Of a stretch of DNA of 64,000 nt, positions 6,256-59,517 are shown piece by piece. The position numbers were made by a program, and so were the translations under genes. A model generated the notes under the pieces. It was given only the letters and a program-made list of their open reading frames with translations, did not search any database and had not been told where the DNA came from. Each line of letters starts with the position of its first letter. The stretch's first letter is position 1. This DNA is from Chlorokybus atmophyticus (Eukaryota > Plantae > Mesostigma and Chlorokybus algae): assembly GCA_009103225.1 (NCBI GenBank), contig RHPI01000772.1:561312-625311 (forward strand), written 5' to 3'.

Positions 6256-8652
6256 TCATACAAGGTTGATGCGCTCATCGGTAGCGCGAGCGTTGCGCTC
6301 ATTGTGTGCGTGCAGCTTTGCTAGCTCCTGCAGCATGCGCTCCTCCTGCTCTTTAAGGGGTAGCTCATCAATGTTCATGATGTCGTCGACATCATCGCGC
6401 TCAATATCCTCCGGCGCCCAATCTGCCTCGCACACACCTGCCTTTCGGAAAACGTTGACAATAGTGTGAACAGACAACTCCTCCCAACACTGCTGCACAT
6501 GTGCACAACGATGACCAGTCAACGTGCCGCATGTAGCCACCCGCCGTATATGAGTGGTTGGCTGGGCCAGCCATCCACAAAGCCCATTGAGCACATGCGC
6601 AGTCAGAGTCAGCATCACTAGTAAACAGGGTAGTTGTTGCTACTGCACATTGTTAACAAAGCTCACCTTCGCACGCAGCATATCCTTGAAAGGTTTGTTG
6701 ACGCCAACATCAAGCGGCTGCAAAATGGGAGTGCACCCACCAGGGATGACTGCTTGATCAACAGAGATGGCGCTGAGGCGTTCCTTCACAGAGTCACACC
6801 TGCATGATTGCAACATCAACACATGCATGCAATGGCAGCAACAGAAGTGATGTGCATGTGCGTGGCATGCACATGGCGTGCATGAAGCTATCAAACCAAA
6901 CCTGTGTGCTGAAAACGAGTCCCAGATGAGCAGTGCTCGTTTACCAAACACTCGCTTTGACCTCTTCCGCATCACCGCATCCACCCACTCCACCGTATGG
7001 GCCTCGTCCATCCATCCCTTCTCGTTAGCCCACACCAGTATCCCCTGCGGCACCACCAAGTCGTTGGGGATAGTCTTGCGCTTGAGAATAATAACAGGTG
7101 GTAGCTTTGTGCCGTCCAAAGCACACGCTAGCACCACCGTCACATTCTTCTTCTCACTTCCTGCCAATGTGCAGACTCATCACACGACGTTTTTCATGTG
7201 TGTATAACATTCAGCATTTATTATACAATTGCATCACGCACTTGTAGTAAATGAGCATTTGTTGCATTGCACCTTCTTCTTGGAGTAAACTATTATTAAC
7301 ATAAATGCACGCAAAAATGTATAGCATTGCCAACACAACACAGCTTTCGTTAACACATGTGCATGCTTACAAGTCGTGCGCATAGTCACGGTTTAACTGC
7401 CTTACTGATTGACTGTCCGACCAGCCATCATATCCACTGTCACGGGTACCTCATGTGACTGGAGGCATATCTGACGCTCTTTCATATATGTGATGTAGAT
7501 GCGATGCCCCTCAACTTTCTCGGCAACATCATGAGGCAGTTTCTGCCCCACCTTCGTATGGCGACGCACGGTGAGATCATGGCGCGCCATGAAACGCACG
7601 ACCCAATTCAAGGACACCCTTAAGGTCCAAATGTTCGCATCGTCATCAGCGCTTTCATTGTGCTCCACAATCAAGTGTTGGGCCTGCAACTGCACAGGCA
7701 AACAACATGATCATGCGCATGCACATTGACTGCCGCATGCCACATACACATGCATGCTAACTGGGTCATGCCACACTCGCAACAGCTGATTGTAATTACT
7801 CTGATCATGGCTTGGGTGACTCTAAGCCCGCGGGAACGTCAATCTACAATGTAATCATACACCACAGCATCCAGCTCGGGATAAGCAACCCCCCTGCCAC
7901 CACCCTTCAATCTGCAGTCGCTAGCACAGGCAGCCATTGTCTCCAACTCTTGGCGAAGCCACTTTCGCAGAGATGGAGCATGGACGCCATGCTCTCTCTC
8001 CGTCTTCCTAATGCCTATATGCTTTGCTATTTGAATGAGCTTGCGCTGTGGAGTTAAATAGCAACTAGTTAGCAGCTAGCAGCGGACACGGCAACAACAC
8101 AACAGTTAATCAGCAGCAACAATGACGATAAAGACACGCGCACACACATTGCTGACAACACAACGTCACGACGCAACACACAGACAATAACGACAACAAT
8201 ACCGTGCAACACACGCACACAGCAACGACACCAACACAGCAACAACACAATGCAGCACATGCACACATCAACAACATTAACACAACAACAACACAATGCA
8301 GCACACGCACACAGCAACAACACGACACACACATGCACATGCACGCACTGCAACGACACACGCACACACACACATTGCTGACTGATTGACACACCTTCTG
8401 ATGGATGCTGAAGGCTCGGCGCTTGTACCGCCGACCTTCACCGTTGGTGCGGCGGGTTGCGTGCACACATTTCCCAATGCCAGTTGGACGGTAGCCTCTA
8501 GCGTCTCGCTGCTCCTCTACTGCGACATTTGCTGCAGCATCGCTTGCCCTTGCAGCTGCTTCAGCTGCAATCGTTGCCGCCTCCTCCGCTTCGTCGGCCT
8601 GCCTCTTCTATCGATGCTGAGCAGCCAGTCTGGCTGCTGCCGCTCCTACCAT
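6256..8652 (-). pseudogene. Spliced pogo-type transposase pseudogene (HTH_psq-like, HTH_Tnp_Tc5/CENP-B and DDE_1 domains)
   Basis: Motifs include RRAFSIHQK, SLNWVVRFMARHDLTVRRHTKVGQKLP, KKNVTVVLACALDGTKLPPVIILK, LLIWDSFSAH and VIPGGCTPILQPLDVGVNKPFKD. There are in-frame stops (e.g. TAG at 8608-8610), a frameshift near 7890, and the first catalytic NMDE motif is eroded. Confidence 0.88.
8070..8390 (+). repeat. Low-complexity CAA/CAC-rich tract (TG-rich on the minus strand) filling the first transposase intron
   Basis: Repeated acaacaacacgcacac-like units are visible and produce the Cys/Val-rich spurious ORFs in the track. Confidence 0.8.
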
Positions 8653-50889: not shown

Positions 50890-52049
50890 GACCAAGCACA
50901 CGCCAAGCACTTTGTACACTTGTACTAAAATGGGACAGTTGTATCCTTACCACATTTGCTCGCCACACAGACTCGTAGTGAATAGGAACAGGCCGTGTGC
51001 GGTTATGTGCATATACTCGTGTTGATTGATTATGGTGCCTCAGACTGTGCACACTGCGTCTGCTCATGGCTGAGATTGTTGGGCCTCGCTTGCCCTGAGC
51101 CTTAAGAAGCTCTACGTGCTGGTTCCAAGTATAAGGCTTTCCTGATGAGTCGTCCGCTCAAAGCTCACAGTCTGTTGTGTGGGATTGGTGTCCTTACTAA
51201 TGTCACTTTTTCTGCAATCAGTCGTCAATGAGTTTGGTACCAACATTATTCGCTGCATTTTGTTCTAGTCTATGTAAGGGCCCCAGTGGCCTGCGTTGCA
51301 TGCGTTGAATGGCAACCACAACATGTAACTCACTACCATAGAGACGATGTGGCATAGTGGTTCATTATGTCATTTGACTCGTAGCCGCCCGTTTTGTGCA
51401 CGACACAGGGTATAGCAAGGAGGTGAACAAAGCATAGACAGCATAACACAACAGCAACAAGGAAAGGGCACGGCTCAAATCACTACACCACCAACACCAA
51501 CACCAACACCAAAACTAGTCAAGGGGCTGGTTTTATATGCCAATGCAACGGTAGGGTAGAGGCAAGCAGGCTGAAGTTGCGCCCAGGTATACTGGTGCAA
51601 CGCAGGACACATAGTACCATACCCCTTATATACATAACAATGTCGACCAGCAGCCCAAGCACCTGTCCTGCACATGCATAAAATCCTTCGTACAAACGCC
51701 TTTGCATGCAACCCAAATAAGTGCCAAACAAGCTGCCAACGGTCTGACCGGGGGACTTCCCGGCGCGAAGCAGGACCAGCGGCCGGAGAAGAAGCTCGCT
51801 GTTCTTTCTTTCAGGGGGGGTCTCCAGCTTAACCCACCCCACCCTGGCGATAACCATATGGCGAGGGCTGGGAAGGAGCTCGCTGTTCTTTCAACAATGT
51901 GCCTCGCTGTATACGCTGTCTCAAACCACTAGCCTGATTACCTCGGCCCAGACTACAGTAGAGGCTCTACTGTAGAGCAGACCAAGCCAGACCCCCCAGG
52001 CAGGCTAGTTGCACATGCAGCGGCGGTGGCAGTGCGGGGAGGGGCGGGT

Positions 52050-55000
52050 ATGGGTGCCGCGTCCCGCGCCGCGGAGGAGCTGCGCGCTCTCGTGGCGGAG
52101 GCCGAGGAGGGCGTGGGCGCCCTGCTGGCTGCGCTGGGATGGGCCGCTGCGGACGTCCTAGCGAATGCCGCAGCCGACAAGACACTCCTGCCCTGCAGAG
52201 TAGCAGGTGAGGAATGCATGCGCTTGGTTTGTGTTGTGCCTTTGTGTGCTGATCTGTTTTGTTTGTTGGTATGGCAAGGAGGACTTAATCATGCATGAGC
52301 GGGTCATGCTCGTCATGTGTGTAGTGTATACGTCAAACGGACAAACAAACAAACAAAAAGGAAACAACCGTAATTGCTATGCAGTGCTGAAACTACTGCC
52401 AGGTTGGAGTTCAAACAAACGCACTTGCGTACCATGCCTATACCCTTGCATGAGTAATTGCCTCACCGACTGAATCGCAAAAACTTTTTGCGCTCACAAG
52501 TATACCTTGCGATTCAGTTGGTGACGCTGTTCACATTGTTGCAGGATCAATGTCCATATTCATTTGGTTGTTGTCACATCCAATTCTGCGCATTGGCTCA
52601 TCAAGCATCTTGGTATTTTGTCTGCTGCGAGAGTGAAGGGGCTGTCAATAGGTTGATCCTATTGTGTTTGTGTTTGTGTTTGTGTTCGTGGTTGTGAAGC
52701 GACTGAGGCAGCAACTGGCTGCTTACGCATGCATTGTCTCTTTACACGCAGGCCAAATGCTTTGTTTGCAAGCCAGATATTAGTCAAGTGCTGACTGACT
52801 TCTGTGACTTGCAAAAGTCAGACAGCACTTGACTAGTAAAGTGTTAGCTCAATTGGTCACTGGTTTCTGTGTTTATGCGTCGGTCTGCGTGCTTGAGCAA
52901 TGTCGATGTTGACGTTGTATTACAACTGAATGCGCACAGCTGTTGACACAGCCGGAACCCCAGCTTCAAGTGTTGATTGCTTTCACCCAATGTGAGCTGT
53001 TTGCAACAATGCCATACTGATGTCTGATATTGCCGTCTCAGGCATTCGGCACTCAATGCCAGCGACAGCAATCTCAGAGCACAGCATTAGATGCCAGTTA
53101 ACGGCGCGGGGGATATCCCCGCAGCAGATTGAAGCGCGGCCACCCAGCGCCACTTTTCTATACCAAGATGCTCCTGGCGTGGTATCTTCAGTGCAGCCTC
53201 TGCCTTTGGTGCACGCAACTGCGGTAAGGGGAGACTGTTGGTGGGTTTGCGTGCATGCACGGCCGTGCTTACATGTGCGTGTGTGCAATAAATGTATGTA
53301 TGTTCGGCCAACAGTGCGTGACATCGCGCACGCAGCTAGATCCTTCTACTGCTCATGTCATCACGTCATGGACAAGCGACCAAGTCTCCACTAATGTTGG
53401 ATGTATGTGTGCATGCGCGCGTGTGTTTTTGTTGCCAACATGTTGGCCCCTATGCAACAGCGTGAGGATCCTTCGAGCATCATGGAGGTAGGCGGCATCA
53501 GCATCATCGTGTCGCGGCGAGCGCGTCGTGTCCACGCATATCCTTGCATTCGTATCCAACAATGTAGTTCACTTGTTGCAGTCTGTTTGAGTTGTTGTCT
53601 GCTCTTACTTGTGGCGGCTGCAACGGTCACTTTCCCTTCCAACTTATGCATTATATCAATTACTCAGTGGTCCTCAGCCACACGCTCGCTCCTTCACTCT
53701 TGTACACATGCACTCAACTCAACTCAACCATCCAATGAGTCATGTGTACATTTCTACATGCTGATCAAGAAGTGCTTTGCCTTGACACTTTTTGCCTCAA
53801 CTCCTTTGTACAGCTTGCTACTGCACCCGGCGATATCCACTCGCCACTTGTGTCCTCATGTGAGGACGAGGCGGATATCCTGCCTGCACCACCGATATCG
53901 CGCTGGCGCGCTCAGCAGGCAGTGCAGCGATGGCGGGCAATACCTCGCCGATATCTGCTGTGCGCAAGTATCGCCGATATCAGTGTCCGTCAGCTGACCG
54001 TCTGGGTTGCCGATATCTGTGCGGAGTTGAGCCTACCATCAGCGATACCAGAGCTGTATCGCTATGTGCGCGATTTTTGCATCTGGTTTTCTCACAAACG
54101 GTATCGCCCTCCTGATGATATCGCCACTGCATCGGAGGCTGTTTACTCCTTCGAGCGCGGCATGCGATTGCTCATAAACAACAATGTTGGAAGCAAAGCA
54201 CGCGAGTTTGTACTGGCTTTGTGGAGGAGATTTGCGTTGGCTGATAGTGGCTATGACATCGCAGTCAAGGCTGCGAGAGATGCAGTGTTAAAAGAAACTG
54301 CTGCTAATGCTGATGAAGAGACCTCATTGTCAACTGCTCAGCCTGATCCAGCTGTGTATCACAAGGCCATGATGGAACGCATTGAGATCGAACAGCGTTT
54401 GCTTGAGCGACTGCAACCTCAAGCTATGCCTGTGGCGCGGTAAGGTGTGGTCTTATGTGTGCATGTGGATGCGTGTGCGCATAGATGCAGTATGCATACG
54501 CGCGTGTACTCACACGCACACACGCATGCGTGCGTGGATATGTGTGAGCAGGTATGCATGGGGATATGTATGCGAGTTGAGTAACCAAGAGTTGTTGTTA
54601 TCTCAGCTGTCAGGAGCATGAAGCCTTCAGCACGCATGCTCAAGCAGTAAGAGCCAGCCGATCAGACTACAATCCAGTGCCCGAGTTTGACAGCTTTGCC
54701 CGGCTTGAGCAGGTTAGAAACCATGGCCAAGCGATAGCGTGGTATGTGTCCACATGCATGCATGTGTGTGTGCGTGCATGTGTGCGTGTGCGTGCGCATG
54801 CTTATATCGGTGCGTGTTTTCACATGCCAACCCAAACATTGTGTGACAGAGAGACATGGCAGAGCGGCAGAAGTCAAAGCTGGAGAGGCTTGCAGAGATG
54901 CGAGACTACAAGCGCAGGCGACAAAGGCATCGCAAAGCCGGTGTCACACGAAGGACACCAACAGAGGTAGTAAGCGCGTATACGTGTGCTGTGGGCATTG

Positions 55001-55842
55001 ACAGTTCTGCATGTGGGCGTGCGCGTACATGTTGCAATTTGATGCGACATACCTGTTGCGTGCATGGTTTTGGACTTTGCTGAGAACAATCAAACCTGCT
55101 CACAGGTATTGCGCACAATTATTGACGATCGCATGCACGAGCTGGAGTTATTGGCGGGCGGCATGCCTTCTGCCAGCCAGCATGGCAGGAATGCTGCGAG
55201 TGAACAACCTGAACGCAGTCCAACCGCTAGCACTCAGCCTACTGAGAGTGGTTGGCTACACCGTGTCAATGGTGTCGATGGGAGTCGAGAGTCACATCGC
55301 AGCAGAACAACAGCGGATGAAAGGTACACTTGTACTTGCTCACGCAGCAGGCAAGCGTTTTGATACAGTTTTGAGTGAAAATGTAAGTATGGGCCTGTTA
55401 TGTGTTTTGCATTGCTGCTGTCCGTTGTTGGTCATGTTCAGTTGACATGCCAACACTGACTGTGTGTATGCAATGTGCGTTCTTGCCTGCTTTATGCTAC
55501 AGACATGGACAGCAGTTTGGCTCTCGTGACACTGCGCACAAGGAAATAAAAAGCAGTCACAAGCATGGCGAGCACCGTGAACACAAGCATGATAGGTTGT
55601 CTGGCAAGCAAGAAGCAGCGGACAGTTCCAAGAGGCGGCGCAAGCATGATCACGACTCTGACAGGCAGGCTTGTGAGGATGATGATGGAAGGAGGCGAGA
55701 GCAGCGGAGAACACGCTATGACCGTCACGATGATGTGGATGAGCAAAGGCAACACAGTAGGCACCGCGACCGAAGCAGACAAACGAACTTCTTGCGTTCG
55801 GACAGCAAAGAGGTGGATGCTAGTGACAGGTGGCAGCCATAA
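52050..55842 (+). CDS. SNRNP48: U11/U12 snRNP 48 kDa protein (U11-48K)
   Basis: Exon 1 (52050-52206) splices to 53042 to form a CHHC-type zinc finger, CRVAGIRHSMPATAISEHSIRC. Later exons give LAEMRDYKRRRQRHRK..VTRRTPTE|VLRTIIDDRM (family-typical ERDYKRRR..R.P..VLR.II motif) and an Arg/Asp/Ser-rich tail. The internal exon structure at 53224-53813 is ambiguous. Confidence 0.82.
53538..53559 (+). promoter_or_regulatory. Tandem U12-type 5' splice-site motif (USSE-like U11 snRNP-binding splicing enhancer) in an SNRNP48 intron
   Basis: ATATCCTT (53538-53545), GCATTC, GTATCCAA (53552-53559), starting 77 nt downstream of a strong U2-type acceptor (..ATGCAACAG|53461). The host gene is the one in which USSEs are known. 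Confidence 0.72.
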
Positions 55843-56683
55843 AACAGCAGGAGAATCACTAGCTAGCTTGCTACTTGGGCTGCTCTGCTCAAGCCAGATG
55901 AGTGAAATTGTTTGCTGGTCGTGATTGCCAGTATTGCACCTGACAGCGTGTCATATGGCGTATGGTGCCAGCAGCTCCATCTGTGTGCAGAAATCCGAGG
56001 TGCTATTGCACATACGCGTGACAATGTATGACATCACAAAGCATTGCAACTGACTGTGCGTAAGAAGGTCAGAAGGTTAAGCAATTAACTGCACGCACTG
56101 CAACGGCATATATACAAGCAATAATTCACATAATGGGTTGGCCCAAGCCCCTAGACAACAGCGAAAAAGGTATCACCGTCAGTATGTGAGGCTGTTGTGT
56201 ATGTGCATTGTGCATGTGCAGTACATGGCCATTGTGCCATACCATGCATGCCATTGCCAACAGCAACCAGTCATACAGCACCACCGGGCTAGCACACATT
56301 GACTCTATGCCATTAGCACAATCTCGTACATCTCTTTGGCAATTACTTGGTTACCGACTCCCAATGAGACATGCATACATGTGCGCAAAAGGACGCCAAC
56401 ACAGAAGCGGTCTGGTCTGACATTGTGGTTGAACAGAAGACTTGAACTTCTACACTGCAGATGCTGAACCAGAGACGTGCTCTTGCTTGCCTTGTCAGCA
56501 GTAGGCTGCGACTGACTACTGTTGTTAGCTGACCGGATCACATCGTGACCAAGCGAACACCAGTGCACCCTACATGATGCATGCAGCACGGCGCAAGAGT
56601 GGTAGCGACTGCAACAATGCAGCATACAACACACTGTACAATAATAACCAAGCAATTGGGTTGCCGCTGTTATTGAACTGCCA

Positions 56684-59517
56684 CTAGCTCTCAACCATAT
56701 CATGGTCCTGGTCCTGGTCATCATCATAGAACTCATCATCGCGCGTGACCGTCTTGTCCCTCTCGGCGGGTGTGACGCGGACGTCGGGATCCCCTTCATC
56801 ATCGTCATAGTCCGGGATCATAAAGTCAGGAGGCACCTCCTGCATCTGGACGCTGGGTGCATGCGCGAGGTGGCGTAGGTTCTCAAACACCTGCTGCTTG
56901 ATGTTGTTCATGTAGGACTTGCTATTGAGGTTCTCCATGGTGGTGTTGACGGGGATGCGCAGTTGGTAGTCGGGGCCGTAATAGTTGTAGTAGTCGTTGG
57001 GCGGGATGTCATTGGGAAGCGGCTGCGAGTCCAGGAGCACCGCCGTCTCATACGCCCAGCAACGCGCCACATTGTTTTTTGTGTACCCGCCGCCACCCGT
57101 CACCAGCAACGGTATGCCAAACTTCTTCACAAACTTGACGCACTCGGCATGACCTGCAGCCATCACATCTTCAGTCAGCAAAACACAGTGGTTACAACAA
57201 GCAATCAAATGACTCGCATAAGAATCACAACGCATCCAAGAATCAAACACCGCACTTGCAACGAGAAGCTACAACCAGTCAGCCAACAACGACACTATTG
57301 ACTACATCAAACTACACTGCTTCACTTTGCTAGTCTAGTACTGTCGCTGTTATATATGCGACAAGCAAACAATGCCAATGGACTGATCATACACACACAC
57401 CCTCGCAAAAACACTTAACCAAGAGTTCAACAGATATGTTGAACAGTGGTGTTACTAATCACCTTCAATGGTGAGGTTGAAGACGCCAAGACGGTCGCCA
57501 GCGAGGGAATCTGCGCCACACTGCAGCACGATGGCGCCTGGTTGATACATCTCTATGACTTTCCGAATGATTGGCTGGAACAGCTGACGGAAGCTCGCGT
57601 CATCGATACCGTCCTTCAGCGGCACGTTGACCGAGTAGTGCTTGCCATTCTTCTCACCGTGATCCTTCACGTCCCCCGTACCAGGGAAGAAGAAGTCCCC
57701 ATACTTGTGGAAACTTACTGTCATCACCCTGTCGGTCAAGTAGAACGCCTCCTCGACCCCATCACCATGGTGCACGTCGATGTCAATGTACAATACGCGC
57801 GCATGATACCTGCACATGTGGCAAGCACGCCACAACGGTGAGACCACATACATGCGTGCACATGCCAACCAGCAGTTATATGGCATACTTAAGCAGCTCC
57901 AAGGTGGCCAGCACGAGGTCATTAATGTAGCAGAAACCGGACGCCTCGGACTTTTTCGCATGGTGCAGACCTCCAGCCCAGTTCACTGCAATATCGCTGA
58001 TGCCATGGTTTAACCTGATTGCACCATCTGCAGCACAAAACACCAGGATGTCAACACCAGAAAGACAATGGCATCATACAAATCGTCATTGTTAGACCTA
58101 CCTGTTGTCAGTAACACAGTCGCAGAAATAGCTTACCTATGGAAGCACCCGTGTAGATCTGACAAAATTCAAACAGCCCCTCAAAGACAGGACAGTCGTC
58201 TCCCAGGTTGTCTGCAGTTGCCATCAAAACATATGTTAATGGCGGACAACCAGCGTACTTGTGCGCGCGGCGGGGGGGGGGGGGGGGGGGGGGGGGGGGG
58301 NNNNNNNNNNNNNNNNNNNNNNNNNNNNNNNNNNNNNNNNNNNNNNNNNNNNNNNNNNNNNNNNNNNNNNNNNNNNNNNNNNNNNNNNNNNNNNNNNNNN
58401 NNNNNNNNNNNNNNNNNNNNNNNNNNNNNNNNGGGAGGGGGGACTGCATGCAAAATCCTCTTACATTGTTGTAGTTGTCGCAAGAACTCGGACTGGGTCT
58501 CTGGCGTCACGCGTTGCAGAAAGTCAACATAATCTTCCGAATGGAACTGCGCAAGCTGCACAGGGTATGCACGTCGTGGCCGCTGCGGTGAACAACAGTT
58601 TGTCAGGCGTTGGAGGATGGCGTGCACAGTGATGGGTGCTTGATACACAGGCAGATGCCACTGCCCCCACTTACATACACTTCTAGCTTCTTGTGAAGAC
58701 CATACGCCAGCATGAGCTTGTACGTCATGCAAAGCCTGTGCGGCTTCATCGGGTGGTTCGGCCCATAGTACACATCACCAACGCTAGCTGCAACGTGCAA
58801 ATAACACGTTCAGTAGCGGGATGCGAAGCCTCACCAGAGCACTACTCTGGGCGGCCAGGGGATTGACTGGAGTCAGCTTTGCAAGAATGTAAATACTACT
58901 TGCAGTAGGCTGTTGACGCATGCAACGCCAGTTGATCGATGGTAACTGCATGCAACAACTTGCACAACAGGATCGATGCTGAAGTCATACACATGCAAGA
59001 GCATGCGCGAAGAGTGACGCCAAACGGCAGCAAACAAGTGGCTGCGCAATATACAACTCGAACAAGTGCAAACGTAACAAGTGTTGGAATAGTAGTGCAC
59101 AAGAATACATCAGGCCTTAGTCTGCCACTACCCTGTGCAAACAATGATCCCAGTGCCCATCGTGACCTGGACGCTTCTGGCACAATACGCCGCAGAAGAA
59201 AGGGTAGACAGCCCTTTTCATTTCACAAGACAGCTTAACATGCATGTTGGATGGGGGAAAACAGAGCAAACAGCTTCATACAGATAGCTGTGCTTGCTTG
59301 TTGGACGAGTGCCAGGAGCTGATAGCAACATCGCAAGCAGATGAAAACTTTTTACGACGCATGTCACAACAGCAACATATATTGACAATGGAAACCACAA
59401 TCGGGTTATGCACAATCCAAAAGTGCGCAAGCAGGCAGGAGACGCTCTACAGCATGAACCATTGCCCACACAATTACCATCATAAAAGTAGCAGATGCGG
59501 TCCTTGGCGATAGGCAT
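56684..59517 (-). CDS. HDA9: Class I (RPD3-type) histone deacetylase, HDA9/HDAC3 clade
   Basis: Motifs [100 protein letters not shown] and [18 protein letters not shown]. Confidence 0.96.
58272..58442 (+). repeat. Poly-G run spanning an assembly gap (N 58301-58431) in an HDA9 intron
   Basis: Seen directly. Confidence 0.9.

Follow-up and report, generated by a model that had tools for sequence, protein, structure and literature searches.

In animals and plants, the minor spliceosome is described as limiting itself through tandem U12-type donors in the genes for U11-48K and 65K. Does a similar tandem serve the same end in an early-branching streptophyte alga, and by which splicing reaction? 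The question is raised by a 64,000-nt stretch of the Chlorokybus atmophyticus genome (GenBank assembly GCA_009103225.1, contig RHPI01000772.1, positions 561,312 to 625,311 of the forward strand; hereafter the window, whose own coordinates are used throughout). In a gene of this window that probably encodes U11-48K, a first-pass annotation had noticed two U12-type 5′ splice-site (5′ss) motifs and read them as a feedback switch resembling the U11 small nuclear ribonucleoprotein (snRNP)-binding splicing enhancer (USSE). The motifs, ATATCCTT-GCATTC-GTATCCAA at 53538-53559, are present exactly as it described them. We found that the observation was real but incompletely read and that its interpretation is partly supported: the tandem does lie in a probable U11-48K gene, downstream of an acceptor that is used, and is part of an unproductive 91-nt exon, but it is not a pure enhancer. 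As a whole chain, the reading that the pair closes a frame-breaking exon, and makes of it a USSE-like poison exon whose donor works and is probably U12-type, has in our judgement an even chance of being right.

Junctions and reading frames around the tandem motifs

Four sequencing runs were aligned to positions 51800-56400 of the window (4,601 letters). All of them are stored as contigs and their label as RNA is a guess; because the contigs skip GT..AG introns, we take them to derive from spliced RNA. Run X1, from a 2021 study, and run X2, from a 2013 study, match the window without one difference. The exons of run X3 diverge from it by 4-13%, and X3 probably represents a cryptic species of Chlorokybus (PMC8611356), a tie to that study that we infer. 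Contig depths cannot rank the parts of the gene and contigs lose rare variants; no ratios were drawn from them. The features that matter for the argument are the following.

53224-53460, + strand: U2-type GT-AG intron of 237 nt, GTAAGG...CAACAG, U1 match 6/9 (joint 53223|53461; X1 contig 53227-53464)
53461-53551, + strand: 91-nt internal exon, frame-shifting, a poison exon for the long open reading frame (X1 contig; joint 53551|53814 in X1; 17-nt loose end in X2)
53488-53493, + strand: U1-type donor GTAGGC (GAG|GTAGGC) within the 91-nt exon, read from the sequence; its use would yield an in-frame 27-nt exon (no joint in the contigs)
53538-53545, + strand: first motif, ATATCCTT, a perfect U12-type 5′ss consensus (8/8); exonic, 14 nt 5′ of the cut in use
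53552-53559, + strand: second motif, GTATCCAA, a working 5′ss cut at TTC|GTATCC; 6/8 to the consensus
53552-53813, + strand: GT-AG intron of 262 nt, probably U12-type (joint 53551|53814; retained-intron contig 53522-53843)
53779-53786, + strand: distal GCCTTGAC, 28 nt before the acceptor, with a pyrimidine-rich stretch behind it; could act as a U2-type branch site when the exon is skipped
53794-53801, + strand: branch-site-like GCCTCAAC, with A53800 13 nt 5′ of the acceptor (consensus match; X3 loose end ending in TTCTCCTTAACCT and abutting 53802, aligned by hand)

Taken singly, RTATCCTT is unremarkable, with four occurrences in the window and 2.06 expected. When the whole 64 kb was shuffled with its dinucleotides preserved, only 22 of 1000 shuffles produced, counting both strands, a perfect 8-mer with an RTATCC core within about 25 nt, and the window's own density gives an expected frequency of about 0.001 for a perfect 8-mer no more than 30 nt 5′ of a given donor. 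The pair, whose spacer GCATTC measures 6 nt, lies on the sense strand of the probable U11-48K gene, the single gene where such a pair would be expected. It has the tandem arrangement of U12-type 5′ss that defines a USSE, with an imperfect second copy. A scan of the window with Rfam gave no match.

The contigs contain the joints 52206|53042, 53223|53461, 53551|53814, 54439|54607, 54712|54850, 54966|55106 and 55323|55503. One X1 contig of 768 nt runs unbroken through the two preceding exons (A and B) and 53461-53551, and a separate X1 junction contig links 53551 to 53814. The X2 contig that starts at 53814 carries 17 additional letters at its 5′ end, CGCATATCCTTGCATTC, which occur once in the window, at 53535-53551. 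Together with the X1 junction contig, this fusion means that 53551|53814 stands in two studies; it also shows that ATATCCTT is kept in the spliced RNA, where it occupies positions -14 to -7 relative to the cut. The U2-type acceptor CAACAG|53461 named by the first-pass annotation (AG at 53459-53460) is indeed used, through joint 53223|53461, and it appears dominant rather than rare in the contigs. Two other elements of that annotation exist as sequence and went unused: the GT of donor 53488, found in no aligned contig as a splice site, and a candidate exon at 53336-53402, which is followed by a GTATGT donor and would place TGA 53463-53465 in frame on joining to 53461. Neither of these nor a direct joint 53223|53814 is used by any contig of the runs aligned to 51800-56400. 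Arithmetic agrees, since the X1 contigs summed reproduce the binned depths at 53186-53955, so that no further X1 contig is concealed there.

Unspliced X1 contigs cover 53227-53464, at low depth, and 53522-53843, and thus both introns flanking the 91-nt exon are retained in part of the material. No unspliced contig was found in run X1 for the first intron or for the four downstream introns. This restriction to the two introns flanking the exon makes genomic contamination unlikely. As a side observation, the unspliced 53224-53460 and 53552-53813 look like detained introns around a regulated exon.

The consequences of each joint for the long open reading frame (ORF) are as follows.

91-nt exon (53461-53551) included: stop at codon 159, TGA 53861-53863, 576 nt before the next junction
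Exon skipped, insert of 0 nt: open ORF of 581 aa
27-nt exon (donor 53488): open ORF of 590 aa
ATATCCTT used as donor, insert of 77 nt: premature stop
53336-53402 in any combination, insert of at least 67 nt: premature stop, which falls at codon 136 for 67+27 and for 67+91
91-nt exon joined to the AAGAAG acceptor 53770 or 53773, insert of 135 or 132 nt: in frame, absent from the RNA contigs

The long ORF of 581-590 aa is kept only by skipping the 91-nt exon or by using donor 53488; that the 27-nt exon alone stays in frame had been noted before and is borne out by the frame test. The poison configuration proposed at the time, which relied on the 67-nt exon, is not supported: this exon is unseen in the contigs, and the frame-breaker they show is the 91-nt exon with its stop at 53861. 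We also considered the acceptors 53770 and 53773, which would bring the 91-nt exon into frame, and set them aside: they are unseen in the contigs and lack a U12-like branch site. Compared with X3, the ORF downstream shows six indel events (+3, -1/+1, -2/-1, +6, -9 and +9), all of which preserve the frame. The downstream ORF is therefore truly coding, and some in-frame join must exist. Taken together, it is very probable that a real intron has the second motif as its donor and that the exon closed by this motif breaks the frame.

The class of the 262-nt intron

According to the first-pass annotation, no U12 branch point or acceptor matching the motifs was evident nearby. The contigs show otherwise, in that 53551 is joined to 53814 and GCCTCAAC lies upstream of this acceptor, with its A at 13 nt. 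The annotation had also counted it against its own idea if the first motif proved to be the donor of a true U12 intron, and what was found comes close to this, with the second motif rather than the first as donor of a probably U12-type intron.

Complementarity to U1 is 3/9 at TTC|GTATCC, the lowest among the seven RNA-supported donors of the gene (the others reach 5-7), and a U1-type donor with 6/9 by our own count, GAG|GTAGGC, is bypassed 64 nt 5′ of the donor in use. In the donor GTATCCAAC, the RTATCC core (+1 to +6) is preserved and the departures from consensus lie at +7 to +9, which gives 6/9 to RTATCCTTT. The branch-site match GCCTCAAC (CCTCAAC) is the best of the seven introns, the other six having at least three mismatches. 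Comparison between strains covers 30 nt of the intron end in one sister strain, X3: the 30 X3 letters abutting 53802, CTTTTCCGTTGATACTGTTCTCCTTAACCT, correspond in a hand alignment to 53775-53801 of the window and hold a perfect TCCTTAAC at the matching place, 15 nt from the AG. A branch-site motif of this kind at about 10-15 nt from the 3′ splice site is typical of U12 introns, and the distances found are 13 nt in the window and 15 nt in X3. The distal GCCTTGAC is disrupted in X3. These sequence features make it likely that intron 53552-53813 is U12-type. On a side note, the two branch-site-like motifs, GCCTTGAC and GCCTCAAC, lie 15 nt apart (53779-53801) and echo the 14-nt offset of the donor motifs; the proximal one alone is retained in X3, and it is perfect there.

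The same features bear on the possibility that the pair is a canonical USSE, in which both motifs would only bind U11 and enhance the upstream 3′ splice site, and the major spliceosome would cut 53551|53552 at an incidental GT. The tandem, the used upstream U2-type acceptor and the unproductive product all fit the description of a USSE, the second motif is weak as a U12 donor at +7/+8, and the distal CTTGAC with its pyrimidine stretch could serve U2. Such a cut would, however, use the worst U1 match of the gene (3/9) while the 6/9 donor 53488 stays idle, and it falls exactly at the U12 consensus position. A branch-site-like motif also lies at the U12-typical 13 nt, and it is perfect in X3. We regard this possibility as quite improbable.

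Conversely, the intron could be an ordinary U12-type intron without any feedback, with ATATCCTT as a relic, a chance match or an occasional donor and the 91-nt exon as a product of unregulated or noisy splicing. In its favour, the second motif serves as a donor and has a branch site to match, and acceptor 53461 looks dominant, not switch-like, in the contigs. Chance would also be helped by the local over-abundance of ATATCC and GATATC strings, which raises the odds of a look-alike nearby, and a complete-looking ATATCCTT...TCCTTCAC...AC arrangement does arise by chance at 6680-6800, by eye antisense to a coding ORF. It agrees less well with the expected frequency, about 0.001, of a perfect 8-mer so close upstream of a given donor, with the location of the tandem in a gene family known to be regulated by paired U12 donors of this kind, and with the reading frames: both possible U12-type donors, giving the 77-nt and 91-nt exons, break the frame, whereas the U1-type donor and skipping keep it. 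An unregulated intron is unlikely in our estimation, but still credible.

An AT-AC intron running from ATATCCTT (53538) to TCCTTCAC (53690) and AC (53706-53707) was considered and rejected, as it has no RNA support and a similar arrangement occurs by chance at 6680-6800. In that second place (window 6660-6800), ATATCCTT at 6680 is followed on the + strand by TTCCTTCAC at 6781 and by AC 11 nt on, and by eye the segment is antisense to an ORF that looks like a DDE (pogo/Tc5-like) transposase. Complete-looking U12 signals can therefore arise by chance.

A separate feature of the locus is a cluster of the palindrome GATATC, of which 8 of the 17 copies in the window fall within 53112-54117 (about 1 kb; binomial tail 8e-11). 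Most copies take the form GCCGATATC or GATATCGCC, and within the coding exons each of the three codon phases is represented. RTATCC is also concentrated here, with 5 of its 19 + strand copies within 53113-53875, including ATATCCTG at 53875. Only two of six comparable GATATC sites are unchanged in X3; a strict functional motif is doubtful.

Identity of the host gene

The gene, Chrsp50S06461, probably encodes U11-48K, as judged from its CHHC motif, its domain layout and language-model features. The only cysteines and histidines of the first 80 residues form the array C49-x6-H56-x9-H66-x3-C70, with H-S-M-P (H-x-M-P) after the first histidine. In a protein-language-model atlas, the whole protein was nearest to three PF05253 zf-U11-48K clusters (best 0.93, 196 shared features) and 27 of the 30 matches of residues 1-113 were in zf-U11-48K clusters (best 0.91, 195 features); residues 114-345 had no usable match in this atlas. 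U11-48K proteins carry a CHHC finger at the N-terminus and an Arg-rich C-terminal half (PMC4892727), and in human SNRNP48 a PDCD7-binding helix at residues 8-32 is followed by the finger (bioRxiv 10.1101/2023.12.22.573053). The Chlorokybus protein is predicted to have the same layout, with a helix before the finger and an Arg-rich C-terminal half. An AlphaFold single-sequence model of residues 1-113, with a modest predicted local distance difference test score (pLDDT) of 67.8, places a helix at 3-42 and then a hairpin and a helix over the finger, and 41 of the last 229 residues are arginines. For residues 1-330, AlphaFold without an alignment reached a pLDDT of 42.6. Foldseek against the PDB was uninformative.

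The coding exons outside the switch region are listed here.

52050-52206, + strand: exon that contains the start codon and encodes the N-terminal helix together with C49, the first Cys of the CHHC finger (joint 52206|53042 in X1; translation; same as in the annotated protein P0001)
53042-53223, + strand: exon with the remainder of the CHHC finger (H56, H66, C70), ending in phase 0 (joints 52206|53042 and 53223|53461)
53814-54439, + strand: large coding exon of 208 codons, phase 0 (contig joints; translation)
54607-54712, + strand: coding exon (joints in X1, X2 and X3; translation)
54850-54966, + strand: coding exon (joints in X1, X2 and X3; translation)
55106-55323, + strand: coding exon (joints in X1, X2 and X3; translation)
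55503-55842, + strand: last coding exon, stop codon at 55840 (joints in X1, X2 and X3; translation)

The exons 54607..55842 encode the Arg-rich C-terminal part. The annotated protein of the locus (P0001, jgi/Chlat1 Chrsp50S06461) has 559 aa, and our exon-skip model equals this public annotation save for 22 residues; an exact look-up of the annotated protein on the contigs returned no record. The difference comes from donor 54647 (GCA|GTAAGA), at which the P0001 gene model splices out 22 codons (54647-54712). These codons are present in the contigs of three runs, and both versions are in frame. Minus-strand ORF pieces at 56684-58043, by eye class I histone deacetylase-like, converge on the 3′ end of the U11-48K-like gene.

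The gene might instead encode another CHHC-finger protein or an unrelated one, in which case the motifs would be unconnected to minor-spliceosome homeostasis. Fingers of the PF05253 type are found in TRM13 and GTSF1 too. Homology searches speak for this alternative, and they also weigh against a circuit built on U11-48K. Pfam was silent up to E = 10 on the annotated protein as well as on its isolated finger, and the separate exons also gave nothing, in their case because the first intron splits the finger. A PDB sequence search with residues 30-120 returned an irrelevant weak match and no U11-48K, and a metagenome scan for relatives found nothing. HMMER with residues 114-321 recovered only the protein itself among 1.84 billion representatives, as did word-index protein searches; the fold search offered no information, and the first spacer of the finger is x6, not x5. 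On the other hand, all atlas matches of the whole protein are zf-U11-48K clusters, as are 27 of the 30 for residues 1-113, a single N-terminal finger after a long helix and an Arg-rich tail are arranged as in U11-48K, and the protein lacks a methyltransferase domain, so that it is not TRM13, nor is it GTSF1-like, having 581 aa and one finger. We consider this alternative very improbable as an explanation of the locus; the identity as U11-48K is itself probable.

A proposed feedback circuit and its relation to known systems

The results can be accommodated in the following model. GTATCCAA would be the genuine 5′ss of the 262-nt intron, most likely removed by the minor (U12-dependent) spliceosome, and ATATCCTT, a perfect U11-binding consensus, would remain in the exon; its quality, its position and its host gene suggest that it contributes by binding U11 as well. 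U11/U12 at the pair and the upstream U2-type acceptor 53460 would define the exon together. This acceptor, 77 nt 5′ of the first motif, is in use, and its activation through U11 binding is putative. Inclusion of the exon would shift the frame, bring in the stop at 53861-53863 and preclude the full 581-590 aa protein, and the 91-nt isoform would be expected to undergo nonsense-mediated decay (NMD) or to be retained in the nucleus. Productive mRNA would arise when the major spliceosome skips the exon (53223|53814, as annotated) or uses the U1-type donor 53488, and this splicing may draw on the distal CTTGAC together with the pyrimidine stretch that precedes the common AG. Because inclusion of the exon would block synthesis of the full protein, more active U11 snRNP should lower U11-48K. 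This would be feedback of the USSE type through an element that at the same time serves as a genuine U12 donor. A negative loop of this USSE-like kind is a reasonable reading of the locus.

Several observations at the RNA and motif level speak against this model, in addition to those on gene identity. The most important, and the chief point left without explanation, is that the sole spliced form assembled is out of frame, in two data sets, which is odd for an isoform targeted for decay. Neither of the productive junctions, 53223|53814 and 53487|53814, appears in the contigs, which do lose rare variants. At the donor, the second motif has AA and not TT at +7/+8, positions meant to pair with U11 and U6atac, and GCCTCAAC has two mismatches to TCCTTAAC, including a T-to-C change. 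Finally, the predicted fold of 53440-53620 is less stable than that of shuffled sequences (z +1.57) and reveals no special RNA structure; in view of this lack of notable structure, ATATCCTT should be accessible.

A further step, which we advance only tentatively and hold to be doubtful, is that the Chlorokybus element is a USSE still functioning as a true U12-type donor, i.e. a poison minor intron in the U11-48K gene. If true, a genuine U12 intron may be the source of the silent tandem enhancers seen in animals and land plants, and its splicing would have kept U11-48K in check as early as the common ancestor. The element would then be a plausible halfway stage from a real minor intron to an enhancer that only binds U11, and a working tandem U12 donor in an early-branching streptophyte alga would extend the range of the circuit on the green side. 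The 91-nt exon and the 262-nt intron would also make a compact natural test case in which U11/U12 and the major spliceosome would compete over one acceptor.

Other regulatory systems of minor splicing resemble this arrangement in part. Drosophila dUrp is described as having a U12-type intron subject to alternative splicing coupled to NMD (PMC3584512). As in the circuit proposed here, U12-type splicing in the gene of a minor-spliceosome factor leads to a decay-targeted isoform, and the machinery would lower its own component; dUrp is another gene in another lineage, and no tandem donor pair is described for it. A second case is the autoregulated minor intron of Srsf10 (PMC7244321). The parallel is that productive mRNA would depend on whether minor-type or major-type sites are chosen within one region. 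The regulator of Srsf10 is a serine/arginine-rich (SR) protein, not a U11 component, and tandem U12 donors are not known in that system.

The closest relative is the USSE itself, described as a tandem U12-type 5′ss repeat in non-coding parts of SNRNP48 and RNPC3 to which U11 binds; it does not itself act as a donor, and it activates a U2-type 3′ splice site lying upstream (PMC5473595, PMC3584512, PMC8329584, PMC6865273). In SNRNP48 it gives rise to an NMD-targeted mini-exon isoform and to a nuclear-retained long isoform containing the element (PMC5473595, PMC3584512, PMC8329584, PMC6865273), and it has been reported in animals and plants (Verbeeren et al. 2010, via PMC5473595, PMC3584512, PMC8329584). 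Measured against this description, the Chlorokybus locus shares the tandem U12-type 5′ss motifs in a probable U11-48K gene, the use of an upstream U2-type 3′ splice site, a U1-type donor between acceptor and tandem as in the human mini-exon layout, and an unproductive product with a premature stop, for which decay or nuclear retention is predicted. Its first motif stays in the RNA, as the element does in the human nuclear-held long isoform. In contrast to the described USSE, the second Chlorokybus motif truly serves as a donor, paired with a branch site and an acceptor of its own, and deviates at +7/+8, and the poison exon measures 91 nt and ends at the element rather than 5′ of it.

With ordinary U12-type GT-AG introns, intron 53552-53813 has in common the RTATCC donor core, the poor U1 match, an unspliced contig and a branch-site-like motif 13 nt from the 3′ splice site (15 nt in X3, where it is perfect). 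Unlike them, its donor lacks TT at +7/+8, a second, perfect donor motif stands 14 nt 5′ of it, and its splicing yields an out-of-frame mRNA. All in all, this comparison suggests that the Chlorokybus element works like a USSE, yet is not a canonical member of that class.

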